From the NCBI GenBank assembly GCA_029953675.1, contig JAMWBK010000007.1, forward strand, positions 1,054,001-1,118,000: a stretch of 64,000 nt of DNA, written 5' to 3'. The DNA is from Rhodosorus marinus CCMP1338 (Eukaryota > Plantae > Rhodophyta). How positions within the stretch are numbered: the stretch's first letter is position 1; each line of letters opens with the position of its first letter. This document shows positions 39,255-60,438 of this stretch, one piece after another. Below the pieces are notes generated by a model. That model was not told the origin of the DNA. It did no database searches and saw only the letters and a list, made by a program, of their open reading frames with translations. The position numbers and the translations under genes are program-made.

Positions 39255-40136
39255 ATGGACGGTGATCCTAGATTGAAGAGTTTGAATCAGGTTCTGAAGT
39301 GGAGTGTGAAGGAGTCAACGAAAGATGGCGCGGAAGTGAGGAAAGTTGATCCAAAAGTTGTTGAGGAGAACAAGCACCTGCTGGATGAGCTGTTTAAAGA
39401 CGAGTATGGAGGCATTGAGGCTCTGCGGAAGCTTGCGGCGGACGAATCCGCCGATGTTGGGGACAGGGCAGAGGCACTAGAGGCGCTGGAGGAGTATGCT
39501 CAAGACTTGAATTTTGCTGTCAACTTCGGCAAAGTTGGCGTGCTGAGGACTGCTTTAGACGTCTTCAGAGAAAGCGAGGATTCTCGTCTAAGAGCAAACG
39601 CGGTTTGGCTTCTGGGAACCTCCATGCAGGACGTTCAGAGTATCAAAGATGAGCTGGTCGAGATGGGAGTGATTCCAGTGCTTAAGGAGGCTCTCGAGGA
39701 TGAGAGCTCGGGAAAGGTTCGTGCAAAGGGAGTTATGGCGTCTTCAGCCTTGCTGAGGAACTCCCCGCAGTACGAGGAGCGATTTACTGCAGCGGGAGGC
39801 CTGAACGCAATCGGGATGAGACTGCTAGACACAGAACAGCAACCACGAGAACGTGCTATGTTCTTCCTGGAGCATTCGCGTAGAAACAAGTGTGACTACT
39901 TCGCCAACTACGTCTCCAATGACCAATCGCTGACTGGAAATCTACTTGACAGAGTTGCAAAGGACCAAGACGCAGCGGCTGCTGCTGCCATTGCAGAAGC
40001 AGTTGAACCCTCTGCAACAACCCAAGACCTTTTCCATGCAAAAGCAAACTATCTGAAGGACACGGCAAAGTCGTCCAAGGAACCGGAGCTCAAGCGGGCC
40101 CTGCTCAAGATCGTCGTCAAGATTCCGAATGCTTGA
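39255..40136 (+). CDS. FES1: Hsp70 nucleotide exchange factor Fes1/HspBP1 (ARM repeats)
   Basis: LNQVLKWSVKES, ALEALEEYAQDLNFAVNFGKVG, LRANAVWLLGTSMQD and VRAKGVMASSALLRN; intronless. Confidence 0.88.
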   Translation: MDGDPRLKSLNQVLKWSVKESTKDGAEVRKVDPKVVEENKHLLDELFKDEYGGIEALRKLAADESADVGDRAEALEALEEYAQDLNFAVNFGKVGVLRTALDVFRESEDSRLRANAVWLLGTSMQDVQSIKDELVEMGVIPVLKEALEDESSGKVRAKGVMASSALLRNSPQYEERFTAAGGLNAIGMRLLDTEQQPRERAMFFLEHSRRNKCDYFANYVSNDQSLTGNLLDRVAKDQDAAAAAAIAEAVEPSATTQDLFHAKANYLKDTAKSSKEPELKRALLKIVVKIPNA

Positions 40137-40719
40137 GTGTATCGGACGTGAGCCGGCGGCTAGGTTCCAGTTGCAATTGATTCTAGTCACTGGTCAACCG
40201 ATTTTCCTGTCGGATGACCTGTATTGCCGTACAGGTTATTGAAATCAGACAGAAGAATATATAACGCATGAGCTATACGCCGGAGGACTGTATGCATATA
40301 TTTAAGCACTGAATCATCTGGGGTGAAGCTGGAAACCGGCACTTCCAAGCATACTGAGGACTAATGAGCGGTGCCGATGTAAAACTACGGGAGCTCATTC
40401 CTTGAAGATTGATAAGAGCTCCTATATCACTATTGCACCTGAAGCTTCTCGCAGAGAATTTAGAATCGACTGCTGATTTCTGATGTATGTAGGGAAAGAT
40501 GCGGAAAGTGTTTAGACTATGATAGGTCCAATTAGCACTTTAGAATAAAACGCATCGTTCACTTGGGCGGCGCTCTCCGCAGGCTTTACACGAAGACGAA
40601 CCTCCAGGCACGCGCCACACACTATTGGGGTTTTACTGTGAAACCAACAACCCCAGATGGGTGTCCTACGAAAATCGAAAGGGTAGTAAAAATATGTGAC
40701 GAATACCGGAATAATCACC

Positions 40720-41690
40720 AACTACCTAGTACTGGCAGCACTCTCTCGGCTATTGAGGGCAACCCAGGCATTGCCTCTCCACAGCGTGCGGTTCATAGCG
40801 GCAAGGGCTCTACTGAGGGCGCTGCGGTCGGAGTCAAGGTGTCTCGTGAGCCGAGAAAGGTCTGTCATCGTACGAGTCGCGAGTCTCCCATAAGTCTCGA
40901 GGGCTATCGGGATAAAATCCTCTGGGTCAGCCAGGCTGTGCTATGAAGACATATCTTCTTACTTTTGCCTTGAGCGGCAGTGTGGGCAGTGAGGCCAGTT
41001 CGTGAAGCTGTACGTCGCAGGAAGGCCGTCTGGAGAGGGCTGGTGACTACGACATTGAAGAATAACGTCCGGTGCGTTCGCAGGTGTTTCGCGTAGTTAT
41101 CGGGTGCTCGATGAGGTAGTTCCTCGTTCACTGGTCCTGGCTCGACGACAACGTCCTCGTAGCCCCAATCTGTCAGAAGTCGCGCGGTGGTCGCGCGGTG
41201 TCCGCACTAGCTCGTGGTGTTGATGGATCCAGTCGTTGGGAGCGGGCGCAACGGTGGAGGAGTTAATAACCGTAGACGTCATGGGTCGTTCTGCAGGAGG
41301 GGGAGGGCGCGGGCTGCGGTTGGTCAACGAGCAATACTCCAAGGAGTTGTCGGATGTCCGCGGTGAGTTGCTGCCTTGTGACGAAGAGTGCGCGGGCTGT
41401 TGGAATATCGCGAAGCCAGGTACCACTTGCGCCACCGGTTGCTGAGCGAAGTCGAGCTCGCGCGTAGACTGGGACCGTGGGCTCGTCGACTATGGCACTG
41501 TACGCTTATGCTGATGCAGAGCGTTGGGGTTCAACGCCTCCTCGAGCAAGGGTCCCGAGGCCTGCCGGTTGGGGAAGCAAAGGAGAACTGCCCCTGCTAG
41601 GAATTCCGAGTATGGAACGACGGATGGTCGCTGCTGACGAATCCCTTGTCGCCCTCCGCATTTTTCACCCCGCAGACGCCAGAGGGAGGG
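40720..41690 (-). mobile_element. Decayed RLE non-LTR retrotransposon of a second, older family (3' half)
   Basis: Across frameshifts the minus strand reads RARLRSATGGASGTWLRDIP, CRTTHDVYGY.LLHRC (Zn knuckle), RAPDNY..FFNVVVTSP..AAQGKSKK (RLE), DFIPIALETYGRL and NRTLWRGNAW. This is collinear with, but clearly divergent from, the young family. Confidence 0.8.
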
Positions 41691-44600
41691 GGTTGGGTTC
41701 AAGGACAGTTCGATGATAATCCGTTTATTCAGAGGCTAACTACCCTGAGAAGCGAGAGACAAGACGCTGATGACGCGCGTCCACAAACAAAGCAGAATTG
41801 GAGCGCCACAGGGTCAAAGAAAGCTCGATCGATCCGTTGAAAGCTCTATTAGCAGACTGTCTAAACGCCCTGGGTCGTTGCGAAACAGAGCTCGCAGCCA
41901 GCGAGAACCTACACTATCTATCAAGCCAAAGCACTCAATAATGAGGGGGACGAACCGGTATGTCACCGCCTAATCGCGAAAGGTAGGGTTTGACATCGCT
42001 GCCGCGTACTGCGAATCTTTCACTTGCCGCATGGACCGAGCTGCAGTTCCTCGACGCCGAGCCGACGCAGGCAGGTACCTGGTCGCCTGAGGACAAGGGA
42101 TGGAGAGGTCAATGTGACTGCGACGCGCATTGAGGTCAGTCACAACGAGATCCGCCACCCGCTGTACCGCTGGGGCGTCACTCTCATCAGCAATTTCCGA
42201 TGCCACCGCCAGAGGGACCTCATACTCCACTTCTCGGTCCGTACCGAGCGATTGAGAACGAAGGTAGCGGAAAAGCAAGCGGTTGAGCCGCGTATGGCGT
42301 CTGGTCCGGGCCCCTTGAACCTCCGCACAAGACGCCAACAGATGCGCACCATAATCACTCCACGGCACATTGACCTCGCACAATGCGCATCTAGAATCCC
42401 GCTCAGCAGGCCAAGAAGGTTGCGGCAAGCCCAGGTAAAGTCGTAAGCCTACACGAAGTTCGAGATCGGTAAGCGCCAACCGCGGATACGCAGGTATGAC
42501 CGTGAAGAAACGGGAGCTGAAACTCCCCCCCAAACCGCGCAGGCGAGCCAAAGTCGACGCCGAGCACGAAGTTACTCGAATGCCACCCTTCTGAGTTTAC
42601 ACTCAGAAGGGTGGCACACGAGTCCCGATGTATGTCCCACGAAAGGGGTTTTTGGATTACATCGGTCCTGGAAGGGGCCGGACCCGACCGGGAAACGCCC
42701 TCCTCTGGCGGTCTCGACGGCACAGCCAGCACGACAGCTCCGTGAGGAGGCTATTCAGACCCCCTGGGTTGTGTTGAAAAAGCTCACGAAGCTAACGAGA
42801 ACGCTATCAACTATACCAAAGCACTCGATGATGAGTGGAACAAGCCGGTATGACAATGCCGAATCCGGAAGCGTAGAGTCTAACATAGCCGCAGCGTACT
42901 GGGATTTCTTCAGTTGCCGCATTGACCGAGCTGCAGCGCCTCAGCGAAAAGCAGAAGCAGGCGGGTATCTGGTAGCCCGGGGACAAGGGATACAAAGGTT
43001 GACATATTCACGCCGACGAGCGCTCAGATCGATGATGATCCGTTTATTCAGAGGCTAACTACACTAAGAAGCGAGAGACAAGACGTTGATGACGCGCATC
43101 CACAAACAAAGCAGAATTGGAGCGCCACAGGGTCAAAGAAAGCTCGTTGATGATCGGTTTATTCAGAGGCTAACTACCCTGAGAAGCGAGAGACAAGACG
43201 CTGATGACGCGCTTCCACAAACAAAGCACAATTGGAGCGCCACAGGGTCAAAGAAAGCTCCGTGAGCAGACTATCTAAACGCCCTGGGTCGTTGCGAAAC
43301 AGAGCTCGCAGCCAGCGAGAACCTACACTATCTTTCTTTGACCCTGTGCCGCTCCAATTCTGCTTTGTTTGTGGACGCGCGTCATCAGCGTCCTGTCTCT
43401 CGCTTCTCAGGGTAGTTAGCCTCTGAATAAGCGGATCATCATCTATCAAGCCAAAGCACTCAATAGTGAGGGGGACGAACCGGTATGTCACCGCCGAATC
43501 GCGAAAGGTAGGGTTTGACATCGCTGCCGCGTACTGCGAAGCTTTACTTTCCGCATGAACCGAGCTGCAGTTCCTCGACGCCGAGCCGACGCAGGCAGGT
43601 ACCTGGTCGCATGAGGACAAGGGATGAAGAGGTCAATGTACTTACTGCGACGTGCACTGAGGTCAGTCACAACGAGATCCGCGCCACCCGCTGTACCGCT
43701 GGGGCGTCACTCTCATCAGCAATTTCCGATGCCACCGCCAGAGGGACCTCATACTCCACTTCTCGGTCCGTACCGAGCGATTGAGAACGAAGGTAGCGGA
43801 AAAGCAAGCGGTTGAGCCGCGTATGGCGTCTGGTCCGAGCCCCTTGAACCTCCGCACAAGACGCCAACAGATGCGCACCATAATCACCCCACGGCACATT
43901 GACCCCGCACAATGCGCATCTAGAATCCCGGGGCGTCACTCTCGTCAGCAATTTCCGATGCCACCGCCAGAGGGACCTCATACTCCACTTCTCGCCGAGC
44001 GATTGAGAACGAAGGTAGCGGAAAAGCAAGCGGTTGAGCCGCGTATGGCGTCTGGTCCGCCCCTTGAACCTCCGCACAAGACGCCAACAGATGCGCACCA
44101 TGATCACCCCACGGCACATTGACCCCGCACAATGCGCATCTAGAATCCCGCTCAGCAGGCCAAGGGGGTTGCGGCAAGCCCAGGTAAAGTGGTAGGCTTA
44201 CACGAAGTTCGGTAATCTAAAAACCCTTTCGTGGGACATACATCGGGACTGGTATACCACCCTTCTGAGTTTACCTTGATGATGATCCGTTTATTCACAG
44301 AATTTACCTTCGTGCTCGGCGTCGACCTTGGCTCGCCTGCGCGGTTTGGGAAGGAGTCTCAGCTCCCGTTTCTTCACGGTCATACCTGCGTATCCGCGGT
44401 TGGCGCTTACCGATCTCGAACTTCGAACTTCGTGTAAGCTTACGACTTTACCTGGGCTTGCCGCAACCCCCTTGGCCTGCTGAGCGGGATTCTAGATGCG
44501 CATTGTGCGGGGTCAGTGTGCCGTGGGGTGATTATGGTGCGCATCTGTTGGCGTCTTGTGCGGAGGTTCAAGGGGCCCGGACCAGACGCCATACGCGGCT

Positions 44601-46339
44601 CAACCGCTTGCTTTTCCGCTACCTTCGTTCTCAATCGCTCGGTACGGACCGAGAAGTGGAGTATGAGGTCCCTCTGGCGGTGGCATCGGAAATTGCTGAT
44701 GAGAGTGACGCCCCAGCGGTACAGCGGGTGGCGGATCTCGTTGTGACTGACCTCAGTGCACGTCGCAGTAAGTACATTGACCTCTTCAGCCCTTGTCCTC
44801 ATGCGACCAGGTACCTGCCTGCGTCGGCTCGGCGTCGAGGAACTGCAGCTCGGTTCATGCGGAAAGTAAAGATTCGCAGTACGCGGCAGCGATGTCAAAC
44901 CCTACCTTTCGCGATTCGGCGGTGACATACCGGTTCGTCCCCCTCACTATTGAGTGCTTTGGCTTGATAGATAGTGTAGGTTCTCGCTGGCTGCGAGCTC
45001 TGTTTCGCAACGACCCAGGGCGTTTAGACAGTCTGCTCATAGAGCTTTCAACGGATCGATCGAGCTTTCTTTGACCCTGTGGCGCTCCAATTCTGCTTTG
45101 TTTGTGGACGCGCGTCATCAGCGTCTTGTCTCTCGCTTCTCAGGGTAGTTAGCTTCTGAATAAACGGATCTAAAGTTCGGTGGAGTATGAGGTAGGTCCC
45201 TCTGGCGGTGGCATCGGAAATTGCTGATGAAAGTGACGCTCCAGCGGTACAGCGGGTGGCGGATCTCGTTGTGACTGGCCTCAATGCGCGTCGCAGTTAG
45301 TACATTGACCTCTCCATCCCTTGTCCTCAGGCGACCAGGTACCTGCCTGCGTCGGCTCGGCGTCGAGGAGCTGCAGCTCGGTCCATGCGGCAAGTGCAAG
45401 ATTCGCAGTACGCGGCAGAGATGTCAAACCATACCTTTCGCGATTCGGCAGTGACATACCGGTTCGTCCCTCTCATTGTTGAGTGCTTTTGGCTTGATAG
45501 ATTATCCGTTTATTCAGAGGCTAACTACCCTGAGAAGCGAGAAACAAGACGCTGATGACGCGCGTCCACAAACAAAGCAGAATTGGAGTGCCACAGGGTC
45601 AAAGAAAGCTCCGTGAGCAGACTATCTAAACGCCCTGGGTCGTTGCGAAACAGAGCTCGCGGCCAGCGAGAACCTACACTATCTATCAAGCCAGAGCACT
45701 CAATAATGAGGGGGACGAACCGGTATGTCACCGCCGAATCGCGAAAGTTAGGGATAAACGGATCATCAAAGGTAGGGTTTGACATCGCTGCCGCGTACTG
45801 CTAATCTTTCCCTTGCCGCATGGACCGAGCTGCAGCTCCTCGACGCCGAGCCGACGCAGGCAGGTTTCTGAATAAACGGATCATCATCATCATCATCAGG
45901 TACCTGGTCGCCTGAGGACAAGGGATGAAGAGGTCAATGTACTCACTGCGACGCGGATTGAGATCAGTCACAACGAGATCCGCCACCCGCTGGGGCGGCA
46001 TTCTCATCAGCAATTTCCGATGCCACCGCCAGAGGGACCTCATACTCCACTTCTCGGTCCGTACCGATCGATTGAGAACGAAGGTAGCGGAAAAGCAAGC
46101 GGTTGAGCCGCGTATGGCGTCTGGTCCGGGCCCCTTGAACCTCCGTACAAGACGCCAACATATGTCAGCGTCTTGTCTCTCGCTTCTCAGGGTAGTTTGC
46201 CTCTGAATAAACGGATCATCAAGAGATGCGCACTATAATCACCCCACGGCACATTGGCCCCGCAGAATGCGTATCTAGGTTCCCGCTCAACAGGCCAAGG
46301 GGGTTGCGGCAAGCCCAGGTAAAGTCGTAAGCTTACACG

Positions 46340-46620
46340 AAGTTCGAGATCCACAGGCGTCCAGAAACGACCCTAAGGGATCGCCCTGCTGCACACCCGT
46401 ATGAGCCGCAAAGGTGTGGCTCTCGGCACCCAGGGTGACAAATCGGGGCCCGTTCGGCGCTTCACCATATACGCGGCGTAAGAACGGGAAGCCAGAGGGG
46501 AAAAGCTGACGAACTACCTCAAGCGCGTGTGCTCGAGACACACTGTTAAACGCATGGGCGAAATCCACAGAAAGCGTTGCCATGGGCTCATCGCGGAGAC
46601 CGTCCAGCTCCAGGATAAGA
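46340..46620 (-). mobile_element. Reverse-transcriptase fragment (domains 3-4) of the non-LTR element
   Basis: ATLSVDFAHAFNSVSR..HTGVQQGDPLGS. Confidence 0.92.
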
Positions 46621-47039
46621 GAGAGATGAGATCCGTTTATTCAGAGGTAACTACCCTGAGAAGCCAGAGACAAGACGCTGATGACGCCCATTCCTTGTCC
46701 TCAGGCGACCAGGTACCTGCCTGTGTCGGCTCGGCGTCGAGGAGCTGCAGCTCGGTCCATGCGGCAAGTGAAAGATTCGCAGTACGCAGCGATGGCAAAC
46801 CCTACCTTTCGCGATTCGGCGGTGACACACCGGTTCGTCCCCCTCATTATTGAGTGCTCTGGCTTGATAGTGTAGGTTCCGCTGGCTGCGAGCTCTGTTT
46901 CGCAACGACCCAGGGCGTTTAGATAGTCTGCGCACGGAGCTTTCTTTCGCGCTTCAATTCTGGTTTGTTTGTGGACGCGCGTCATCAGTGTCTTGTCTCT
47001 CGCTTCTCAGGGTAGTTAGCCTCTGAACAAACGGATCGA

Positions 47040-47460
47040 TGACGCCATGGGTGCAGGATACGCGTCACCAGTTCACAGCCACCTGAATAGCCGACACCGA
47101 CCTGGGTCAACCCAAAAAAACCCCTGGCCTCCCTTAGTGAGCTGACGCGATAGAAAGCGGCTCGCCAGCTTCCGCAATGCTTCGCACATCCCGATTGGCT
47201 GAAGGGAAGGTGTCTGATCTGAATGTCCAGGCTTGGGCAAGAGGACCAGTTGGGAGCGCGACAATAGTGCCCAGGCCTCTGCGCAAAAATCCTCCCCATT
47301 GACAAGACTTTCCAGTGCCCGCGCAAGGGCGTCCAGCCCTTCTTCACCCAACCAGCGAAAAAGTTCGACCTGGAGTCCTGAGGGACCAGGTGCACGACCT
47401 TTCGGGGCAGACCTAAGCAGAGCCAGAACCTCATCCGGCCGGACAAGCAACCGACCTCTA
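47040..47460 (-). mobile_element. Reverse-transcriptase fragment (domains 0-2) of the non-LTR element
   Basis: RSAPKGRAPGPSGLQVE, SQLVLLPKP and LQPIGMCEALRKLASR, a CRE/SLACS/Cnl1-style RT N-terminus. Confidence 0.9.
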
Positions 47461-47849
47461 CCGTCATCATCATCATCATCAGTTTATCGGAGCCTAACTA
47501 CCCTGAGAAGCCAGAAACAAGACGCTGATGACGCGCGTCGAACAATAAAGCGTTGGCTTATAGTTACGGTAATATATTAGGCATTTGTCAGCTGGGTTGG
47601 GCGCGATTGGGTTTGTTCGCGATCTTGATGGTCCGTTTATCTTCGTGGGGCCTGCCATCTTTCTGCGGCTGTTCCTCGCCTTTCCCTGCGTTTCCGGGTC
47701 GTCCGCGAAGGGATTTTTGGGTTGTTTTGGTCTGGGAAGGTGGTTCCGGTAGGGTATTGGTCTCATCTTGGCGTTGCTGTTTTGTTCGGCGATATTTCGG
47801 TCATCGGCGGTGCTTGTGGGGTTCACCTGCGCCACTCTTCCCCCAGCGT

Positions 47850-50782
47850 CCGTGGTAGGGCGGAACCGGTGGAATGTCTCATCGACACCGGTGCGGTGAC
47901 GGCAATTAGAGAGGACGTTGCGAAAGCCCCCAACCTACCGAGGTACGACGAGCCACGGACATACGGGTTGGCTGTCGGTGAGGAGACCGTGATCAGCCCC
48001 GGAGTGACGGAGACAACGATCACACTCCAGGGACGACAATTCAAGACGAAGCTGCGAATATTCAAGCATCTAAGCCACGATGTATACTTAGGTCTCGACT
48101 TCTTGAGGCAACATCGAACCATCGATTGCAGCGCGGAGCCCCCACAGCTGGTACTGGGAGCGGAAGGCGCCAGCATGCGTAGGATAGCAAGTATGGAAAC
48201 TGAGGAAGAAATAGGGGAGAGGTCTGGCGCGGTCATCCGGAAAGAGGAAGGCCTAGAGAAAGGCGGAAAGGACCAGGTTGCCGACCGTTTGGTACCCGGA
48301 AAGAGTTTCCCCAAGTTCTCCAAGATACATTGCCGTTGCCACCGAAGAACCGGCAACGATATGGACTCAAAATCGAATTGGAACCAGGGGAGCTGGCGAG
48401 TACACCAGCTCAACGTGCATATTCGATGTCACGGGTCGACCGAGAGCGGCTACAAGGAGAATTGCACTACTTGGAAGAGCAAGGATTTATCTCACGGAGC
48501 AGAAGTCCGTATGCTGCACCTGTGTTGTACGTGGACACAAAAGACGGTGGGCGACGCCTCCGCATCGACTATCGCCGGTTGAATCAGATCACCGTGCGAG
48601 AAAGAACGACCCCGCCTAGAGTGGAGGAGCTATTGGATACCCTGAGCAGCGCTCGGGTTTTCACAACGTTAGACCTTCGCTCGGGATATTGGCAGTTGCC
48701 AATTGCGTGGAACACCTTCGCATGACGGTGGGTATTAGCGGATGGCGCAGATAATTCTTGTGCCAGGGTCAGTGATTTGCGTGCATATGCAAGAATTCGC
48801 TGTTGTCCTTGGGAGAATGCAGTAGCGGCATCGGGGAGGTTCTCAATTTGCGTGGTAGGTAGTGAGACATCCAAGTGGAGCCGCGAATGCCCCCCTGTTA
48901 ACAGTGAGTACCCCGTGCTGGCTGAGGGATGATTGTTATACGCCAGCTGAAGTAGCGGGAGGCTCTGCACCCACGTGCGATTTGTACAGCAGCATCTCAG
49001 CATGATTTGAAGTGTCTGATTCACGCGCTCCGTCTGACCGTCCGTTTCAGGATGGTATGCCGTGGACAATAGTTGTTGAATGCCCAGTAATTGCATTAGG
49101 TGGCGCCAAAAAGTTGCCGTGAGGACTGGATCGCGATCTGTGACAAAACTCTGTGGCAATCCGAACCAGGCGACGATATGTTGCAGGATAAGTAACCGCA
49201 GGACCTGCGGTTACCATTTTCGTCGTCGGGATAAATACGGCGTACTTTGTGAGTCGATCGACCACAACTAGTATAGCGTCATTACCCGCGATACTGGGAA
49301 AGCCTGTTATGAAGTCCATAGTCCAGTCGACCGCGCGATTCTCCGGAATTGCGAGCGGTTGCAGCTCGCCCTGGTTGCGCCGAAGTGGTTGTTCACGGGA
49401 GCATATCTCGCATTGTTGTACGCGCGTGAAAATGTCTTTCCTCATGGTAGCCCAGTAATAGCGTCGGCGCACAAGCTACTTACCGTGTGGTGCGTTACTT
49501 AGTTACAAGCTACTTACCGTGTGGTGCGACGACGCTATTACTGGGCTACCATGAGGAAAGACATTTTCACGCGCGTACAACAATGCGAGATATGCTCCCG
49601 TGAACAACCACTTCGGCGCAACCAGGGCGAGCTGCAACCGCTCGCAATTCCGGAGAATCGCGCGGTCGACTGGACTATGGACTTCATAACAGGCTTTCCC
49701 AGTATCGCGGGTAATGACGCTATACTAGTTGTGGTCGATCGACTCACAAAGTACGCCGTATTTATCCCGACGACGAAAATGGTAACCGCAGAAGGAGTGG
49801 CAACACTTATCCTGCAACGTATCGTCGCCTGGTTCGGATTGCCACAGAGGTTTGTCACAGATCGCGATCCAGTCCTCACGGCAACTTTTTGGCGCCACCT
49901 AATGCAATTACTGGGCATTCAACAACTATTGTCCACGGCATACCATCCTGAAACGGACGGTCAGACGGAGCGCGTGAATGAATCAGACACTTCAAATCAT
50001 GCTGAGATGCTGCTGTACAAATCGCACGTGGGTGCAGAGCCTCCCGCTACTTCAGCTGGCGTATAACAATCATCCCTCAGCCAGCACGGGGTACTCACCA
50101 TATTTCCTGTTAACAGGGGGGCATTCGCGGCTCCACTTGGATGTCTCACTACCTACCACGCAAATTGAGAACCTCCCCGATGCCGCTACTGCATTCTCCC
50201 AAGGACAACAGCGAATTCTTGCAGATGCACGCAAATCACTGACCCTGGCACAAGAATTATCTGCGGCATCCGCTAATACTCACCGTCATGCGAAGGTGTT
50301 CAAATAAATAAACGTAATCGCCAACGTGGAACCACGTTGGCGATTACGTTTTTTTGTCAACGAAGAATCTCTCACTGGAGGGCCCAACCCGCTTCCAACC
50401 TGGATGGTTGGGCCCGTTTCCCGTGATCGAGAAACACTCTGACGTGGCATACACTCTGCAGTTACCGGATGAGATGCGCATACATTCGACATTTCACGTT
50501 TCCTTGCTAAAAGGTGCCCCTACGTGTCCTCCGAATTCTCCGATGCGGAGTATCCCTCTCCAATCGGATCTCTATTCAACGCTACCGATCCTGTCGGTAT
50601 TGGGGGTCCGCCACGCGGCTAACGGGATCCGACAGTTCCTATGTTATCGCGAAAAGGAATCCTGGACTGATGCGACTTGGATACCCGAGCCGGACTACCC
50701 GACCGATCTACAATCTCGACGACGCTTACGACACTACCTCAATTATCGCAAGGCGCTTGAAGCGCTACCTTCAACTTCTTGA
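47850..50782 (+). mobile_element. Ty3/gypsy (chromovirus-type) pol: protease, partial RT, integrase, chromodomain; rearranged and frameshifted
   Basis: Protease CLIDTGAV; RT LRIDYRRLN and FTTLDLRSGYWQ; IN YYWATMRKDIFTRVQQCEIC, WTMDFITG, VTDRD, STAYHPETDGQTERVN; GPY/F-like PGWLGPFPVI; chromodomain-like RQFLCYREKESWTDATWIPE. Most of RT and RNase H is missing. Confidence 0.95.
48709..50301. repeat. Long inverted repeat of the gypsy integrase region (arms about 48709-49472 and 49524-50301, 51-bp spacer)
   Basis: Minus ORFs 49472-49047 and 49159-48584 encode nearly the same protein as plus ORFs 49521-50066 and 49978-50307. The DNA arms differ by only a few substitutions and small indels. Confidence 0.95.
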
Positions 50783-50809
50783 GTTTGTCCCCAAACTCGG
50801 CAGGAGGAA

Positions 50810-51311
50810 TGTTCGAACTTGCCCTGACAGCTGTGTAATCTGTGTAAGACACTCCCTACTTTAGTGTAAGACGCTAATGTGCTAGAATCCAACAGTTTCT
50901 ATTTTACTGTCAGTCTTAGTTTACAGTAACCAATACTATATAAGACCTAGCTTTGCTAGATCTTGAGACCTAGAATTAAGTAAAGACAAGTTGGTTAGAA
51001 GAGTTCTAACAGAACTGTTACGTCCTGACCGAACAAGTCAGCCGTCAGGAGTTTGGCCCAAAACAAGGCTAATAATAGATCAGTCTAAATCTAATAATAG
51101 TACTCTAGCAAACCCAAGACATGAACCGGAAGCCTATAAATACGGAAGTTATGACCTTCCGTCTTAGGATTAGAGCTAGAGGAGAGTATCCAAGATAGAG
51201 AAAAGATAAAAACATAAAAGGGAATTTAAAACTATTTTGGATCATCGACACACGTTAATGGAGAACGTGTCAAGTGGTCTCATCGCAAGAGTTGCGATTG
51301 AGGAACGAACA
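50810..51311 (+). mobile_element. LTR (about 502 bp) of the gypsy element
   Basis: Follows the purine tract GGCAGGAGGAA (50799-50809). Begins TGTTCG and ends CGAACA (6-bp inverted termini), contains CTATAAATA at about 51133, and is followed by gag. Confidence 0.8.
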
Positions 51312-51321
51312 TTAATGAGCC

Positions 51322-51424
51322 CAGAACCAGAAAACCTGAAAAACCAGAAAACCAGAAAAACCAGAAAACCAGAAAACCTGAAAAACCAGAAAACCAGAAA
51401 ACCAGAACACCAGAAAAAAACCTG
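51322..51424 (+). repeat. Short tandem repeat (CCAGAAAA-like units) in the gypsy 5' leader
   Basis: ccagaaaacctgaaaaaccagaaaaccagaaaaaccagaaaaccag.. Confidence 0.9.
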
Positions 51425-51435
51425 ACAACCAGAAG

Positions 51436-51705
51436 ATGGCATCGCTACTCAAGATCCAGGCTCCACAGCCGAAGGCCTACGACGGGCGACGCGACGCCCT
51501 GCTCATCACTACGTTCCTGAACAGCCTGAGAACTTATTTCAAATTAGCGAGACTTCCCGACGACGATGACGAATACAAAATTACCCTGGCAGAAGGGTAT
51601 TTGACGGGTGATGCTTCGTACTGGTGGTCCTTAATTGCGGAAGACCAGCGGCCGACAACCTACGCGGACTTTGAATCTACGTTGAAGGCGCAATTTTACC
51701 GCTGG
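51436..51705 (+). mobile_element. Truncated Ty3/gypsy gag (capsid N-terminal part)
   Basis: PKAYDGRRD..FLNSLRTYF..KITLAEGYLTGDASYWW..TYADFESTLKAQFY is a typical retrotransposon gag motif; similarity stops abruptly at about 51705. Confidence 0.9.
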
Positions 51706-52289
51706 GACAAGGACAGCTGTCCCCGGAGCGATCGTCCCAGATGGAACTGGCACAGGTGGGACAGCCACCGCCGCCGACGGCGAGCCTTGACCCGGGGCAT
51801 TGGCAAAGGCGGCAAGGGAGGAAGTCAGCTCCGGGAGGCGGTTGGCCTCAGCAGCAACAGCAACAGCGCGAGCAATATGAATGACTAGGGCCTCTGCGGT
51901 AGCCTTGGAGCAACCTGGCAGCTCGGCGAGCGTGCCAAATCGCCCAAGCCGAAGTTCCACCGACAACGGTGGGGTGCTCGACGCGGCCATCACGAGGGGG
52001 ACCGCGAAAGAACGCCGTAGAAGGGCACAACCACCAGGAACCTTCTGAGTCCAAGGGAAATCCCCGCCACAAACGCACTCGAACCCCCCCGAAGAAAAAG
52101 AGAAACACCCCCGCAACCCCCGGAGAACGTCAAAACCCCCTAACAACCACCAACCGTTTTACACAGACCGAGAAACAAGCGGGGGAAAGACCGCTGAAAG
52201 CATCGCCTCCCACGAAAGAACACTTAGGCCCCCAAAAATGCGCCAAACCCAACTCCAGATCACAATCACAATCCAAAACCCCTACCGCG

Positions 52290-52875
52290 TGAGGAATCGA
52301 CAAAAGGATCTAAGACACGCTGGAACTCAGAGTTCCAACTCACGTCGCGCGCAGGGAACAACGCAGCGACTGGATCAGCCAGGTCAGTCCGATACGGCTC
52401 GACTGAAGCGCCTTGCTGGAGGATGGCCGCCCCACGCCGAATATGCCACTGTGCCACTGCTGCCTTTGCCCGTACCTGCCTACGGGAACGAGAAGAAGGT
52501 GAAGTCCCGCACGAAGAGGAAGAAGAGACACTAGCGAGCTAAAAAGATTCTAAGAAAGCAAAGTCCCAGGCCAGAAAAGACTGAACTTTGCGTCTAATTG
52601 GACATGCAGCGCGCCCCTGGGAGACCGTGAGCACTAGCCGAGGAAAAACAAACAAAGCCTTCCAAGCAAATGCTGCTTGAGGATGGTCGGCCATCTCCAT
52701 AAGCAGGAAATCCAAAAGAAAAGAAACCCTCCTGCGCAAACGATGCGGGAGAGAGACTGGGGGCGAACGAGGGCAAAGAGGGATAACCCCAGAAGGAAAA
52801 CGCCCAACAAAACCTTCGAACCAAGAGAAAAGGCGAGAACGCCAGTCCTGAAAGCTACCCGGGCTCGAAAAGAAA
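52290..52875 (-). mobile_element. Pre-RT (5') region of the non-LTR element, copy 1
   Basis: AWKALFVFPRLVLTV..IRRKVQSFLAWDFAFL, then RAKAAVAQWHIRRGAAILQ..AALFP. Near-identical sequence lies at 57420-57830. Confidence 0.75.
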
Positions 52876-55800
52876 GCAGGAAGCTCAGCTCAGATCAGTG
52901 ACGACTAGGTCGCCAACCGTTGGTTGCACCTCTGGGGCGTCAGCCTCATTAGCAATTGCCGTTGCCACCGGCAGGGGGACCTCATACTCCAACTCTCGGT
53001 TCGTGCCTAACCTGAGAACGAAGATGGAACAGCAAACGGTTGAGCCGAATATGGCGTCTAGTCCGGTCCCCTTGGACCAGGAAGCCAACAAGTGCCCACG
53101 AAAATGTACATAGACCTCTCCATCCCTTGCCCTAAGGCGACCAGGTACCTGCCTGCCTCTGCACGGCGTCGAGGAGCTGCAGCTCTGTCTATGCGGCATG
53201 TGAAAGAACCGCAGTACGCGGTAGCGATGTCAAGCCCTACCTTTCGTGATTCGGCGGTGAGATACCGGTTTGTCCCCCTCATTATTGAATGCTTTTGGCT
53301 TGATAGATGATCCGTTTATTCAGAGGCTAACTACCCTGAGAAGCGATAGACAAGACGCTGATGACGCGCGTCCACAAGCAAAGCAGAATTGGAGCGCCCC
53401 AGGATCAAAGAAAGCTCCGCGAAACAGAGCTCGCAGCCAGCGAGAACCTACACTATCTATCGAGCCAAAGCACTCAATAATGAGGGGGACGAACCGGTAT
53501 GTCACCGCCGAATCGCGAATGGTAGGTTTGACATCGCTGCCGCGCACTGCGAATCTTTCACTTGCCGCATGGGCCGAGCTGCAGCTCCTCGACGCCGAGC
53601 CGACGCAGGCAGGTACCTGGTCGCCTGAGGACAAGGGATGGAGAGGTCAATGTACTCACTGCGACGCGCATTGAGGTCAGTCACAACGAGATCTGCCACC
53701 CGCTGTACCGCTGGGGCGTCACTCTCATCAGCAAGTTCCGATGCCACCGCCAGAGGGACCTCATACTCCAAGATAGTGTAGGTTCTCGCTGGCTGCGAGG
53801 TATCTTTCGCAACGACCTAGGTAGAGCGTCTAGATAGTCTGCTCACGGAGCTTTCTTTGACCCTGTGGCGCTCCAATGCTGCTTTGTTTGTAGACGCGGG
53901 TCATCAGCGTCTTGTCTCTCGCTTCTCAGGGTAGTTAGCCTCTGAATAAACGTGAAGAAGAAAATCACCGCAAGGCACCGAACCGCCGCACGCGTGTTAC
54001 GAGGCCTTCATCATCACATTATCATCATCATCCGTTTATTCAGAGCTTAACTACCGTGAGAAGCGAGAAACAAGACGCTGATGACGTGCGTCCAACAATA
54101 ACGGAACGCCAGAGGGTCAAGAACAGCTCTGTGAGGAGGTGATCAAGACGCCCTGGGTTGTTCCGAAGGAGCTCAGGAAGCCAACGAGAACCTACACTAT
54201 CAACTAAATCAAAGCACTCGATGATGACAGCCCCCATCATCGAGTGCTTTGGTGAGTGGAACAAACCGATAGGACAATGCAGGATCTCGGAGCGGCGAGT
54301 CTAACATAGTCGCAGCGTACTGGAATTCCTTCAGTTGCCTCATTTACCCAGCTACAGCGCCTCGGCGTCGAGCAAAAGCTGGCAGGTATCTGGTAACCTG
54401 GGGACAAGGGATAGAAAGGTCGATGTACTCACTCCGACGAGCGCTCAGAACGGCGCGTCCGTTGCCGGACCTAGTGGATCAGTAACCACTAAGTCCGCCA
54501 CCCGTTGCACCATTGGGGCGTCAATCTCATCAGCAATTTCCATTGCCACCGGCAGGGGGACCTCATACTCCACCTCCCGCTCCATGCCGGCCAGCACCTG
54601 AGAACAAATAGAGAGGAACAGAAAGCGGTTGAGCCCCGTATGGCGACGAGTCCGGGCCCCTTGGAGCTGCGGACAAGATGCCAGCAAGTGCCCACCAAAA
54701 TCACCGCAAGGCACTGAGTCGCCGCCCTGGTTGCATCTCGAATCCATCACGTTTATTCAGAGGCTAACTACCCCGAGAAGCGAGAGACAAGACGCTGATG
54801 ACCCGCGTCTATAAGCAAAGCAGCACTTGAGCGCCACAGGGTCAAAGAAGGCTCCGTGAGCAGACTATCTAGACGCCCTCATCATCATCATCATCATCAG
54901 TTTATCAGAGCCTAACTACCCTGAGAAGCGAGAAACAAGACGCTGATGACGCGCGTCGAACAATAAAGCCGCGTTGGAACGCCAGAAGGTCAAGGACAGC
55001 TCCGTGAGGAGGCTATCAAGATGACTTGGGCTGTGACGAAAGAGCCCACGAAGCCAGCGAGAGCCGACACAATCAACTAAACCAAAGCACTCGATGATGA
55101 GTGGAACAAACCGATAGGACAAGCGGAGCGTAGAGTCCAACATAGCTGCAGCGTACTGGGACTCCTTCACTTGCCGCATTGACCAAGCCGCAGCGCCACG
55201 GCAGCGTGCAGTTGCGGGTAGGTATCTGGTCGCCTGAGGACAAGGAATAGAAAAGTCAACATACTCACTCCGACGGGCGCTGAGATCAGTCACCACCACT
55301 AGATCCGCCACCCGCTGCACCCCTGGTGCGTCAGCCGTATCAGTAATTGCCGTGGCCACGGGCAGAGGGACTTCATACTCCACCTCCCGGTCCGTGCCCT
55401 GCATCTGGGAACGAAGATAGCGAAACAGCAACCGGTTGAGCCGCGTATGGCGACGAGTCCGGGCACCCTGGACCTGCGGACAGGATGCCAACAGGTGTTC
55501 ACCGAATTCACCGCACGGCACGTGGCTACCGCACAGGTTACAACTCGAGGCCCCAACCGCGGGCCATGGCGGTTGGGGCAAGCCAAGGTACAAACGTAAG
55601 CTCGTGCGCATCTCGAAGTCTGTCATCACTAGCCGCTGGTAGGCAGGAATGACCGTAAAGAAGTGAGAGCTGAGGCTACCACCCAAAGCACGGCGTTGAT
55701 AAACTGATGATGATGAGGGAGCCAAGGTCGAAGGCGGAGAGGAAGCTGAACCTAGAAGGGTGGCGTACGAGTCGCGATGTATGTCACAGGAAAGGGATTT

Positions 55801-58800
55801 TTGTACTACATCAGTTCTCGAAGGGGCCGGGCCCGACCGGGTAACAGACTCCTCAGGCGGCCTCGACGGCGCGGCAACTGCGTCCGTTTCAGCATCGACA
55901 CCATCCACGTCAGCATCGACACCATCCACGTCAGCATCGCCTCCAGCGCAAACGCCAGCCCCCATCCGGGCTCCACTGTCAAGACACGGTTCCGCCGCAG
56001 AGCTTCCCGAACGAGATCCGCCAAAAGAGTCAAGAACTGCCCGCCACGACCCGTAGCACGACCCGTAGCGGGGGTGTGTACCGCTTGGCAGGGCAATACA
56101 TTTCTGAAACGCACCCTCCAGCTCGTCAAAAACGCCTCCGAGCCTCGAGCTGAGAGTCACGTCCAAATGCCCCTCACGGAGGCCACGCACGGCGGGATTG
56201 CTCTCCTTAGACCAAGTAGTTAAAGCATTTGGTGAGCTCTTGGGCAAATGAGGGTGAGCTCTTGGGCAAATGCCCAAGAGCTCAACACGGCCGCCGGTTG
56301 GATTATTGCATAAGTCGTGGTGAAAGAAACCTCGCAGCCAGCGAGAACCTACACTATCTCTATCAAGCCAAAGCATTCAATAATGAGGGGGCAAACCGGT
56401 ATATGTCACCGCCGAATCGTGCTCGGTAGGGTTTGACATCGCTGCCGCGTACTGCAATTCGTTTACATGCCGTTTGGACTGAGCTGCAGCTCCTCGACGC
56501 CGAGCGGACGCGGGCATGTAACCCTTTCGTAGGACATACATCGGGACTCGTATGCCACCCTTCTGAGTTTACCTTCGTGCTCGGCGTCGACTTTGGCTCG
56601 CCTGCGCGGTTTGGGGGGGAGTCTCAGCTCCCGCTTCTTCACGGTCATACGCAGGTATCCGCGGTTGGCGCTTACCGATCTCGAACTTCGTGTAAGCTTA
56701 CGACTTTACCTGGGCTTGCCGCAACCCCCTTGGCCCGTTGAGCCGGATTCTAGATGCGCATTGTGCGGGGCCATTGTGCCGTGGGGTGATTATGGTGCGC
56801 ATCTGTTGGCGTCTTGTGCGGAGGTTCAAGGGGCCCGGACCAGACGCCATACGCGGCTCAACCGCTTGCTTTTCCGCTACCTTCGTTCTCAATCGCTCGG
56901 TACGGACCGAGAAGTAGAGTATGTGGTCCCTCTGGCGGTGGCATCTGAAATTGCTGATGAGAGTGACGCCCCAGCGGTACAGCGGGTGGCGGATCTCGTT
57001 GTGACTGACCTCAATGATGATCCGTTTATTCAGAGGCTAACTACCCTGAGAATGCGCGTCGCAGTGAGTACATTGACCTCTCCATCCCTTGTCCTCAGGC
57101 GACCAGGTACTTGCCTGCGTCGGCTCGGCGTCGAGGAGCTGCAGCTCGGTCCATGCGGCAAGTGAAAGATTCGCAGTACGCGGCAGCGATGTCAAACCCT
57201 ACCTTTCGCGATTCGGCGGTGACATACCGGTTTGTCCCTCTCATTCCTGAATGCTTGGCTTGATAGACAGTGTAGGTTTACAGGGCGTCTAGACAGTCTG
57301 CTCACGGAGCTTTCTTTGACCCTGTGGCGCTCAAATGCTGCTTTATTTGTCGACGCGCGTCATCAGCGTCTTGTCTCTCGCTTCTCAGGGTAGCTAGGCT
57401 CTGAATAAACGGATCATCATCAAAGAGAAGAAAGTGAAGTCCCGCACGAAGAGGAAGAAGAGACACTAGCAAGGTATAAAGATTCTAAGAAAGCAAAGTC
57501 CCCCGCGAGAAAAGACTGAACTTTGCGTCTAATTGGACATGCACGGCGCCCGTGGGAGACCGTGAGCACTAGCCGAGGAAAAGCAAACAAAAGCTTCCAA
57601 CCAAGTTCTGCTTGAGGATGGTCGGCCACCTCCATAAGCAGGAAATCCAAAAGAAAAGAAACCCTCCTGCGCAAGCGGTGAGGAAGAGAGACTGGGGGGC
57701 GAACGAGGGCAAAGAGGGATATCCCCAGAAGGAAAACGCCCTACAAACCCCTCGAACCAAGAGAAAAGGCGAGAACGCCAGTCCTCAAAGCTACCTGGGC
57801 TCGGGAAGAAAGCAGGAAGCTCGCAATGTTCCCTAAAAGACTCAGACATCCTGCTCCCTCACCACGGAGGAAGGTCTACGAGATGCGAATCCGCAAGGGA
57901 ATCAGAATTATCATCATCATCATCATCAGTATATCAGAGCCTAACTACCCTGAGAAGCGAGAAACAAGACGCTGATGACACGCGTCGAACAGTAAAGCCG
58001 CGTTGGAACGCCATAAGGTCAAGGACAGCTCGATGATCCGTTTATTCAGAGGCTAACTACCCTGAGAAGCGAGAGACAAGACGCTGATGACGCGCGTCCA
58101 CAAACAAAGCAGAATTGGAGCGCCACAGGGTCAAAGAAAGCTCCGTGAGCAGACTATCTAAACGCCCTGGGTCGTTGCGGAACAGAGCTCGCAGCCAGCG
58201 AGAACCTACACTATCTATCAAGCCAAAGCACTCAATAATGAGGTGGACGAACCGGTATGTCACCGCCGAATCGCGAAAGGTAGGGTTTGACATCGACAGC
58301 TCCGGGAGGAGGCTATCAAGACGACTTGGGCTGTGATTATCATCCCTGCATCTAATTTGGACAACCTTTGGCATAGAGTCAGTGAGTGGGTTTCACCCCG
58401 CTGATGACGCGCGTCCACAAACAAAGCAGAATTGGAGCGCCACAGGGTCAAAGAAAGCTCCGTGAGCAGACTATCTAAACGCCCTGGGTCGTTGCGAAAC
58501 AGAGCTCGCAGCCAGCGAGAACCTACACTATCTATCAAGCCAAAGCACTCAATAATGAGGGGGACGAACCGGAATGTCACCGCCGAATCGCGAAAGGTAG
58601 GGTTTGACATCGACAGCTCCGGGAGGAGGCTATCAAGACGACTTGGGCTGTGATTATCATCCCTGCGCCTAATTTGGACAACCTTTGGCATAGAGTCAGT
58701 GAGTGGGTTTCATCCCGCTGATGACGCGCGTCCACAAACAAAGCAGAATTGGAGCGCCACAGGGTCAAAGAAAGCTCCGTGAGCAGACTATCTAAACGCC

Positions 58801-59460
58801 CTGGGTCGTTGCGAAACAGAGCTCGCAGCCAGCGAGAACCTACACTATCTATCAAGCCAAAGTACTCAATAATGAAGGGGACGAACCGGAATGTCACCGC
58901 CGAATCGCGAAAGGTAGGGTTTGACATCGACAGCTCCGTGAGGAGGCTATCAAGACGACTTGGGCTGTGATTATCATCCCTGCGTCTAATTTGGACAACC
59001 TGTGGCATAGAGTCAGTGAGTGGGTTTCATCCCGCTGATGACGCGCGTCCACAAACAAAGCAGAATTGGAGCGCCACAGGGTCAAAGAAAGCTCCGTGAG
59101 CAGACTATCTAAACGCCCTGGGTCGTTGCGAAACAGAGCTCGCAGCCAGCGAGAACCTACACTATCTATCAAGCCAAAGCACTCAATAATGAGGGGGACG
59201 AACCGGACTGTCACCGCCGAATCGCGAAAGGTAGGGTTTGATATCGACAGCTCCGTGAGGAGGCTATCAAGACGACTTGGGCTGTGATTATCATCCCTGC
59301 GTCTAATTTGGACAACCTTTGGCATAGAGTCAGTGAGTGGGTTTCATCATCATCACGTTTATTCAGAGCCTAACTACCCTGAGAAGCGAGAGACAAGACA
59401 CTGATGACGCGCGTCTGCAAACAAAGCAGCATTTGAGCGCCACAGGGTCGAAGAAATCGC
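52876..59460. mobile_element. Nest 2: further self-nested non-LTR (RLE) fragments from at least two subfamilies
   Basis: Same CCHC/RLE motifs as nest 1, with about 11 further 3' termini. The longest copy (about 54880-56330, minus) runs from the post-RT region to RFSG* and ends TTAGGCTCTGATAAAC(TGA)n. Confidence 0.95.
58084..59346. repeat. Tandem array of four 317-bp composite units
   Basis: The anchor ctgatgacgcgcgtccacaaac occurs at 58084, 58401, 58718 and 59035 (exact 317 period); units are nearly identical. Confidence 0.97.
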
Positions 59461-60438
59461 TGCGTCTAATTTGGACAACCTTTGGCATAGAGTCAGCGGG
59501 TTCCATCCCCGCGATCTTTGTCATTGGACACGTTTTAGAGTGGATCGTATGTCATCTATACTCTGTTCCATCAAAGAGGAGCTTCTAAGAGATGTCAGAT
59601 TGGCGCAGGAGATGGAAATTGGAGCTTTTAGGAAAACCTCTTGCAGTGCAAATTTCGTGGGCCAACAACAGCAAACCAGCAAACCAGCAAACCCACCTGG
59701 TGGCCAATGATCCCATTCCTCGCCGTCCACATGATGACTACTTAGTCCTTTTGTTTCGCAATAATTTATTAAAATAGATTTTTTTTATAATAGATAATAT
59801 GCAGCGGATCCTATCCTAACGCTTTTGGGATGAATTCTGAGGGGTGGGTTCTATTTTGCCAGTGACGTGATCAGAAATAGTTTCTGAATGAAAATATGGG
59901 GTTTTTGCAAGATATTTTGCACAAATAGTGAGTATGTTCTGGGGGGACAAAGTATGTTGCGTGTGTACCTCGAGCGTTCCGTGGAGGCTGGAATATACTC
60001 CGACGTGTCCCACGACAGGTGGGACATCGTCGTACCAGTGTTTGAGCGGTGGGCCCCGTTCGGAACCAATGTCCAAGCCGTTCTCAAGGCCTTTCCTTGC
60101 ATTTGGATAGCTACTGGAGTGAGACTAGACCTTCCGCCCCTTCACCACAAAGGCCATTGTGAAGGCCCAGAGTACTGTCCCGAGGTTGGAGTGGAAAGAA
60201 ATCTAGGATTCTTGTTCGGTACTCAATTGACGTCGCGTTGGCTGTTCGGAGGGCTGGAGAGGGGGTACTTATACACAGCTTATACGCCAAGTTGGGTTGT
60301 TGGTGAACGCTTTCGGCGATTGGGGTAAGAGAGGAGGCGTGTGAGGTCGTATGGTGAGGGATGGTGACAGAAGAGATGGATATGTTCTTTGATTGGAGCG
60401 GGTGATGGTTTGGTTGTGCGGAGGGAGGGCTGGGGTGA

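Follow-up and report, generated by a model that had tools for sequence, protein, structure and literature searches.

The locus described here lies in a window of 64,000 nucleotides of nuclear DNA from the red alga Rhodosorus marinus CCMP1338 (assembly GCA_029953675.1, contig JAMWBK010000007.1, 2,212,799 bp), where an intergenic repeat island of ~18 kb holds 24 3' termini of one non-LTR retrotransposon family (LTR, long terminal repeat), most of them inserted in other copies of that family. The R. marinus assembly comprises 31 Mb in 13 large contigs, six of which run telomere-to-telomere, with repeats making up 15% (PMC10250338). The nest is situated ~49–50% along its contig (about 1.07–1.11 Mb of 2.21 Mb) in either orientation of the window. 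A single-exon gene (39255–40136) is the last before the nest and genes restart at ~60.4 kb; no annotated genes are called inside the nest region, which has a GC content of 55–56% vs 48.5% in the gene arm. Two blocks of nested 3' fragments of this long interspersed nuclear element (LINE) enclose a dead Ty3/gypsy element (Table 1).

Searches with the core terminal motif TTAGSCTCTGA, allowing one mismatch, returned 19 occurrences in 41.7–59.4 kb against an expectation of 2.1 for the whole window, while the rest of the window contained two 1-mismatch matches, which is the chance level. Matches to a 176-nt probe of the 3' end and to two longer references were likewise confined to 41.7–59.5 kb, with none in the 46 kb of flanks. 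Each junction was then printed in element orientation, and this reading confirmed all 24 termini that the first-pass annotation had counted by hand, 15 on the minus strand and nine on the plus strand, all within 41.7–59.5 kb; its observation that the gene arm at 0–40 kb is free of termini extends, by motif and probe searches, to everything in the window outside the island. Three subfamilies can be told apart by their 3' ends: subfamily A ends in ..TAGTTAGCCTCTGAATAAACGGATC (..AATAAACGGATC) followed by (ATC)0–6, subfamily B in ..TTAGGCTCTGATAAACTGAT (..GATAAACTGAT) followed by (GAT)n, and subfamily C in ..AATAAACGTGAT followed by (GAT)n. The tails at the 24 identical 3' ends thus consist of (ATC)n or (GAT)n with 0–6 units, and the window has no free (ATC)n microsatellite, since all of its (ATC)n runs of four or more units are tails of the element. 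The open reading frame (ORF) of the element stops at a TAG 20 nt before the 3' end. Copies diverge from one another by 1–20%. A conserved RNA structure in the 3' 110 nt was considered and rejected: the 15 predicted pairs show zero compensatory changes, and roughly the final 60 nt are just strongly conserved.

All copies are 5'-truncated and none is full length, with lengths ranging from 12 nt to 1.4 kb; the longest are a copy of 1.4 kb (54880–56295) and one of about 1.9 kb with an internal deletion (45501–47462). At least 12 insertions carry target-site duplications (TSDs) of 4–8 bp, with both junctions readable and the host resuming in register, and these events are therefore true insertions. 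No two termini have both flanks and truncation point in common. The combination of tail, 5' truncation and TSD is the signature of target-primed reverse transcription (TPRT) after two staggered nicks, and early abortion of TPRT is very frequent, five insertions consisting of merely 12–35 nt of element plus tail. The two fragments at 46626–47040, whose 5' ends are joined, may stem from a single integration that both nicked strands primed, or from two hits on the same site. Twin priming was considered as the origin of the inversions and rejected, as it joins two 5' ends, whereas here a 3' tail meets host body.

Downstream of 21 of the 24 termini lies own-family sequence, five old and divergent hosts having been read by eye, so that the host is usually another family copy, as the first-pass annotation had proposed. 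The insertions lie overwhelmingly in own copies, not in the gene arms or the neighbouring gypsy block (5.3 kb), which contains none of the 24 termini (P = 2e-4 under uniform insertion in the island). Its description of the new copies as mostly antisense to their hosts did not survive: the nine cases that it called antisense are all antisense, and the three that it listed as sense exceptions are sense, but seven further sense junctions (41719, 43037, 43152, 45170, 54030, 54746 and 54896) had been overlooked, giving 11 antisense vs 10 sense over the 21 in-family junctions (binomial p = 1). Among events with both junctions resolved, eight are antisense and four sense, with one two-ended pair. Orientation is fixed per site and follows no general rule.

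With copy 1 (41716..42722, subfamily A) as coordinate reference A1–1007, about half of the 21 in-family insertions use four positions (S1–S4), each with a fixed orientation and a reproducible TSD. S1 (A897), at the boundary of CACG and GAGC and 110 nt short of the 3' end, was used in four events, all sense, with TSDs of 7–8 bp that begin at the same base in all four; the inserts are 12 (a fossil), 263, at least 680 and 1007 nt long and their hosts belong to three lineages (old C-like, A and B). S2 (A807), at GGCTTGATAGAT^AGTG and 200 nt from the 3' end, was used in three events, all antisense and with TSDs of up to 4 bp, by inserts of 105, 460 and at least 750 nt in hosts separated by many substitutions. 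Given the different host lineages or substitutions and the different insert lengths, the events at S1 and at S2 are independent. S3 and S4 account for two events each; beyond S1 and S2, two positions were used twice within 1–7 nt, namely A122–127 (one micro-insertion and one fold-back in another copy) and A586–592. Altogether, nine site pairs lie within 3 nt of each other, where a random placement of 21 sites on 1 kb would give 1.5 (P about 1e-4). Examined post hoc, the 5' truncation of two copies falls 2–4 nt from S1, and a deletion of 31 nt in one copy begins 2 nt away from it. The recurrent fixed-orientation sites, A897 used four times in sense and A807 three times in antisense, argue for some sequence-level recognition of the family's own 3' region.

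Textbook examples of site-specific retrotransposons are the non-LTR elements that encode a restriction-like endonuclease (RLE), which insert in ribosomal DNA (rDNA), spliced-leader (SL) genes, small nuclear RNA (snRNA) genes or microsatellites. The R. marinus family has the reverse transcriptase (RT) type, defined 3' end, simple tail, variable 5' truncation and TSDs of a non-LTR element. Two RT fragments on the minus strand (46352–46625 and 47041–47462) match the RTs of LINE-1 ORF2p and R2 in the PDB, and match the RT of relatives with Pfam RVT_1. The 3' 750 nt code for a domain in which a C-x2-C..H..C (CCHC) motif precedes E, R(P)xD, D and K, all conserved, and in which C45, C48, H60, C65, E97, R121, D140 and K170 are invariant over 52 homologues. 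An AlphaFold model of the window's C-terminal domain (predicted local distance difference test score, pLDDT, 79) was compared with the PDB by Foldseek; the top seven matches were all R2 proteins (probability 0.99–1.00, TM-score 0.45–0.61), and PD-(D/E)xK nucleases ranked far behind them. Sequence similarity to R2 is marginal (E = 0.004–0.09 in PDB sequence searches), and the C-terminal profile reached R2 at E = 0.09 only, so that the fold search was needed. The nature of the 486-aa ORF (54916–56376), for which a Pfam search gave no match, is read from the homologue profile and predicted fold only.

An exhaustive profile search found 15,563 representative proteins that share the C-terminal domain, the closest about 30% identical, while the closest match in a word-indexed homologue search was 36% identical; in neither search did the protein collection yield an annotated protein of the R. 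marinus family. Eight long relatives (720–1561 aa) were scanned against Pfam: all eight carry RVT_1, two have PHD/RFX domains N-terminal of the RT (P0078 both, P0126 RFX only), one has a ubiquitin C-terminal hydrolase (UCH) domain C-terminal of it (P0065), and none has the apurinic/apyrimidinic (AP) endonuclease domain Exo_endo_phos. The relatives P0004 and P0009 bear Cys/His motifs at the N-terminus. The family is therefore an RLE (R2-superfamily) non-LTR retrotransposon, as shown by the RT fragments, the CCHC/E..R(P)xD..D..K domain and a predicted fold that matches R2 proteins only. The earlier label of CRE/R2-type accordingly stands as to the RLE class, be the clade CRE, R2 or another.

The island lacks the targets that define those clades. 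No rRNA gene matched in 40–60.5 kb at E <= 1, and Rfam and tRNA scans of the island found no rRNA, snRNA, SL RNA or tRNA gene, returning sub-threshold hairpin matches that are caused by the inverted repeats; a telomere-like array is likewise absent from the island. The classical R2, CRE and telomeric target types are therefore excluded at this locus: the insertions are not in a 28S rRNA gene, as in the R2 clade, nor in the SL genes or telomere repeats used by CRE elements.

The reading that we favour, at a probability of roughly 0.6, is that the endonuclease/DNA-binding module of the family prefers its own 3'-end sequences; the target then multiplies with each insertion and the island grows between genes. 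Insertions would derive from full-length source copies elsewhere in the genome, whose DNA-binding and endonuclease module would recognise sequences in the element's own 3'-terminal coding region; each new copy starts at the 3' tail and is cut short at its 5' end. Every truncated copy carries the S1/S2 region, so each insertion adds targets, and the nest would expand with the genes left untouched. By analogy with the clusters of the algal LINEs Zepp and ZeppL, the island may belong to a small number of such loci in the genome and might be a centromere.

Several observations weigh against a preference for own 3' ends. Three termini (57415, 57925 and 59352) lie in non-family DNA of the island, about 10 other sites were used once each, and a comparison by eye found no convincing common motif across S1, S2, S3 and S4. 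The argument from the 0 of 24 termini in the gypsy block is weakened, as that block cuts a B-type fragment and may postdate most insertions. The sense junctions at 43037, 45170, 47478, 54030 and 54746 have no other host half and could be RT template jumps instead of separate insertions. The head-to-head arms 43441–43930 and 44485–44972 of copies 3 and 5 are 98.8–99% identical, the closest pair in a set of copies with a median of 92%, which suggests an inverted duplication or else two near-simultaneous insertions. As regards the element, the RT N-terminal fragment scores higher against L1 ORF2p than against R2 in the PDB, and the window lacks the element's N-terminal part. Finally, the self-copy enrichment is known from one locus only.

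The same pattern could arise from regional targeting or survival only, by an element of low sequence specificity that prefers heterochromatin or centromeric chromatin, perhaps via an N-terminal chromatin reader, or whose insertions elsewhere are removed by selection, the self-hits then reflecting the composition of the region. The use of at least 14 different positions with no evident common motif would fit such an element, as would the three insertions in non-family DNA of the same island, the PHD and RFX domains upstream of the RT in relatives, and the genes that closely flank the island. However, it leaves unexplained the four S1 and three S2 events at the same nucleotide with fixed orientation and TSD length, as well as the absence of hits in 5.3 kb of gypsy DNA inside the island, and we regard it as possible but unlikely.

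It is improbable that there were substantially fewer events than termini, the remainder having been generated by RT template jumping, fold-back or inverted duplication, unequal crossing-over or gene conversion. In favour of such processes are the 317-bp array of four units, the 220-bp internal duplication, the near-identical head-to-head arms, the short fold-backs and the 1.6-kb gypsy palindrome, and the five sense tail-to-body junctions without a resolvable host half would be open to this explanation; nevertheless, both junctions can be read, with a TSD, in 12 or more insertions, no two termini are alike in flanks and truncation point, and the tandem array holds no terminus.

The full model of the first-pass annotation, in which an antisense preference for own copies evolved and the nest makes double-stranded RNA and small interfering RNA and seeds heterochromatin, is in our judgement quite improbable. 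Inverted repeats of 150–490 nt at 95–99% identity are indeed present in the nest, and eight of the 12 fully resolved single-ended events are antisense, but the overall count shows no antisense excess and orientation is set by the site. Moreover, the CpG observed/expected ratio is 0.97–1.05 in the two LINE blocks vs 0.92–0.94 in the gene arms; CpG depletion as a sign of methylation is thus absent in the nest, and a ratio of about 1.0 means that the old repeats bear no trace of long-term CpG methylation decay.

That the structure is an artefact of assembling repeat-rich DNA from Nanopore reads alone is scarcely credible: the assembly was built from Nanopore reads with NextDenovo and Pilon short-read polishing (PMC10250338), and palindromes and near-identical repeats are present, but the junctions show exact insertion anatomy (tail, truncation, TSD and host resuming in register), the copies differ by 1–20%, and a single contig of 2.2 Mb carries the nest together with unique genes to its left and right.

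Arrays of self-nested LINEs have been described before, and the behaviour is less unprecedented than the first reading of the locus implied. New copies of Zepp (Chlorella, Coccomyxa) and ZeppL (Chlamydomonas) target old ones to give arrays that consist mostly of 5'-truncated 3' ends, in chromosome-internal clusters of 1.5–42 kb with GC above that of the genome, one per chromosome and with no copies outside them, that are regarded as centromeric (PMC8226300, PMC3446292, PMC11005252). The R. marinus nest resembles these in its nested 3' ends in own copies, its size, its raised GC, its mid-contig position and the lack of copies in the 46 kb of flanks. Zepp and ZeppL, however, belong to the L1 clade, encode an AP endonuclease, have poly(A)-type ends and reside in green algae, whereas the R. 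marinus family has triplet tails, an R2-like endonuclease at the C-terminus and a red-algal host, and inserts in both orientations at fixed internal sites. Cnl1 of Cryptococcus neoformans forms subtelomeric own-copy arrays of 5–80 kb, with inserts from 25 bp to full length and TSDs of 0–12 bp (bioRxiv 10.1101/2021.08.11.455996); the R. marinus family similarly builds an own-copy array (inserts of 12 nt to 1.4 kb, TSDs of 4–8 bp), but halfway along a contig of 2.2 Mb, in an island that has neither a telomere-like repeat nor a full-length copy.

With R2 the family shares the order of an RT followed by CCHC and PD-(D/E)xK motifs, a C-terminal 250 aa whose predicted fold matches R2Tg, R2Bm and R2Pm, and TPRT in which copies are often 5'-truncated and a site is cleaved at reproducible positions; unlike R2, which inserts in 28S rDNA, it has no rDNA in or near the nest, several target positions and marginal sequence similarity. 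RLE elements generally find their safe havens in multicopy DNA, transposons and microsatellites among it (PMC4640811), as do the repeat-targeting lineages CRE/SLACS, NeSL, R4/Dong, Utopia and the microsatellite-specific HERO and Togen families. The R. marinus family too has simple-repeat tails, and differs from these lineages in that its recurrent targets lie within the coding 3' end of the element itself. Among other non-LTR elements, GilM/GilT of Giardia and HeT-A/TART of Drosophila also form head-to-tail arrays by repeated addition to earlier copies, but theirs are telomeric and of uniform orientation, while the R. marinus nest is internal and mixed. The R. marinus case has its lifestyle in common with Zepp and Cnl1 and its enzyme type in common with R2-like elements; it stands apart in the red-algal host, the mid-chromosome position, the triplet-repeat tails and the internal target positions, each with its own orientation.

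If the preference for own 3' ends is real, a safe haven can be self-made and self-expanding, with the cleavage sites in the element's own 3' end, and the Zepp-like cluster-forming lifestyle would have arisen independently with another endonuclease and in another algal lineage. By the same analogy, the island is a possible centromere candidate. The broader proposal, that an RLE-type LINE made short stretches of its own 3'-coding sequence its targets, which even abortive insertions would multiply, and that each Rhodosorus chromosome has one such nest as its regional centromere, is at present doubtful; if true, no transposon-built centromere would have been described in red algae before, and the nests would have converged on the L1-type Zepp clusters of green algae, to which they are unrelated. 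To our knowledge, red-algal centromeres are essentially uncharacterised outside the tiny Cyanidioschyzon genome, and a GC-rich, gene-free, mid-chromosome LINE nest offers a concrete candidate for which a near-chromosome assembly is at hand.

Table 1. Features of the repeat island, in window positions; A-numbers refer to copy 1.
Feature	Position	Strand	Remarks
Whole repeat island	41640..59520	.	Intergenic; two LINE 3'-fragment blocks around dead Ty3/gypsy block
LINE blocks of nested 3' fragments	41716-47563 and 52893-59456		Flanking gypsy block
Termini, minus strand (n=15)	41719, 43037, 43152, 44286, 45504, 46629, 47478, 53309, 54030, 54746, 54896, 57019, 57925, 58035, 59352	-	
Termini, plus strand (n=9)	43437, 45170, 45768, 45882, 46217, 47037, 53952, 55709, 57415	+	
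Copy 1, subfamily A, 1007 nt	41716..42722	-	Sense at S1 in older divergent copy; TSD ACAGYTC (7 bp); 23-nt fold-back 42574-42623; S1 holds fossil micro-insertion of 12 nt
Fossil 12-nt micro-insertion at S1	In copies 41716-42722 and 44212-45175		TSD GAGCTTTC
Older B/C-like host, ~79% identical to B	42723..43030	-	Interrupted on both sides
3'-terminal 112 nt (A896-1007) + (ATC)2	43031..43146	-	Sense junction in older copy at A586; 5' edge is S1
Copy 3, 3' part (A804-1007)	43147..43331	-	Tail adjoins S1 of fragment 43031..43146
105-nt copy + tail	43332..43440	+	Antisense at S2 (A807); TSD ATCT
Copy 3, body (A322-807, then A261-551)	43441..44211	-	Head-to-head with copy 5
220-bp tandem duplication in copy 3	43701-44150		95% identical
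Copy 5 (A63-1004)	44212..45175	+	Fossil S1 micro-insertion shared with copy 1
Micro-insertion, last 17 nt of element + tail	44280..44305	-	Antisense; TSD TTTACC
Host fragment A493-807	45180..45502	+	Cut at S2
Copy 8, 3' part (A256-1007)	45501..46351	-	Antisense at S2; holds three nested antisense insertions
Micro-insertion, ~20 nt	45748..45769	+	TSD AAAG
Micro-insertion, 17 nt + (ATC)5	45867..45898	+	TSD AGGT
Insertion, ~55 nt + tail	46153..46222	+	TSD A(G/T)ATG
Copy 8, RT fragment (..SVDFAHAFNS.., ..GVQQGDPLG..)	46352..46625	-	Joined to A256 by internal deletion
58-nt 3' fragment	46626..46687	-	Left half of tails-outward pair within RT region
385-nt 3' fragment	46688..47040	+	Right half of pair; GATGA on both outer flanks
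Copy 8, RT N-terminal fragment (..KGRAPGPSGL.., ..LLPKPG..)	47041..47462	-	
Subfamily B 3' end, (GAT)5	47463..47563	-	97% identical to B1; head-to-tail on RT fragment; cut by gypsy block
Dead, rearranged Ty3/gypsy (protease, partial RT, integrase, SH3, then gag)	47564..52892	+	Not of LINE family; no LINE terminus
Older B/C-like fragment (A402-560, 82%)	52893..53078	-	
Host copy 15, left part (A608-807)	53108..53308	+	
Copy 16 (A494-1007, 460 nt)	53309..53770	-	Antisense at S2; TSD AGAT; 31-nt deletion 2 nt from S1
Host copy 15, right part (A804-1001)	53771..53963	+	Degenerate tail
Older-copy piece (about A300-385, by eye) + next copy's tail	53964..54029	-	
Copy 17, subfamily C (A325-1007)	54030..54745	-	17-nt fold-back 54210-54251
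Host copy 18, 3' part (A868-1007)	54746..54879	-	
Copy 19 (B1), subfamily B, 1.4 kb	54880..56295	-	Sense insertion in copy 18 at about A868
486-aa ORF carried by copy 19 (B1)	54916-56376		Ends 20 nt short of 3' end
B-type micro-insertion, about 12 nt + tail	55700..55721	+	Antisense in B1
Host copy 18, 5' part (A646-867)	56296..56520	-	
Copy 21 (A76-1004)	56520..57420	+	Head-to-head with copy 18; tail adjoins non-family DNA
34-nt insertion + tail	57017..57056	-	Antisense at A592; TSD AATG
Non-family, LTR-like piece	57421..57900	.	Between two inward-pointing tails; 92% identical to 52487-52886
Copy 23, B-type, 3' part, (GAT)6	57901..58031	-	In non-family DNA at TTATCATC; 5' part 58296-58336; TSD TTATC, 5-8 bp
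Copy 24 (A725-1007)	58032..58295	-	Sense at S1 of copy 23; TSD ACAGCTC
317-bp tandem array, 4.0 units	58337..59348 (counted from 58082)	-	98% identical; no added 3' terminus
Copy 25, subfamily C, 105 nt	59345..59456	-	In unique DNA; 5' end 2-4 nt from S1; right nest edge

To the left of the nest, the 1.6 kb that separates it from the last gene (40137–41715) is unique in the window and has 54% GC; a Pfam search with its open frames gave no match, and its final ~75 nt may be what is left, in degenerate form, of the 3' end of the oldest host copy. Within the gypsy block, a palindrome of 1.6 kb with arms 94.7% identical occupies 48710–50301, where the integrase region is duplicated in inverted form in place of most of the RT/RNase H, and a minisatellite of 11 units, (AACCAGAA)n, lies at 51325–51417 between the pol-like and gag-like parts. 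A 400-bp repeat pair (52487–52886 and 57422–57822, 92% identical), the second copy of which lies between two inward-pointing LINE tails, had no match in Pfam and is probably a long terminal repeat (LTR) or other repeat.

In the right-hand block, each unit of the 317-bp array joins one A fragment and one B fragment to 63 nt of unique DNA, and a nested junction has in this way itself been turned into a satellite-like repeat. Fold-back (inverted) duplications of 17–23 nt occur inside LINE copies at 42574–42623, 54210–54251 and 56230–56287; the first lies within 1 nt of the site that the micro-insertion 44280–44305 occupies in another copy, which suggests repeated nicking repaired without insertion. 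Micro-insertions and fold-backs at the same positions provide a natural record of abortive TPRT.

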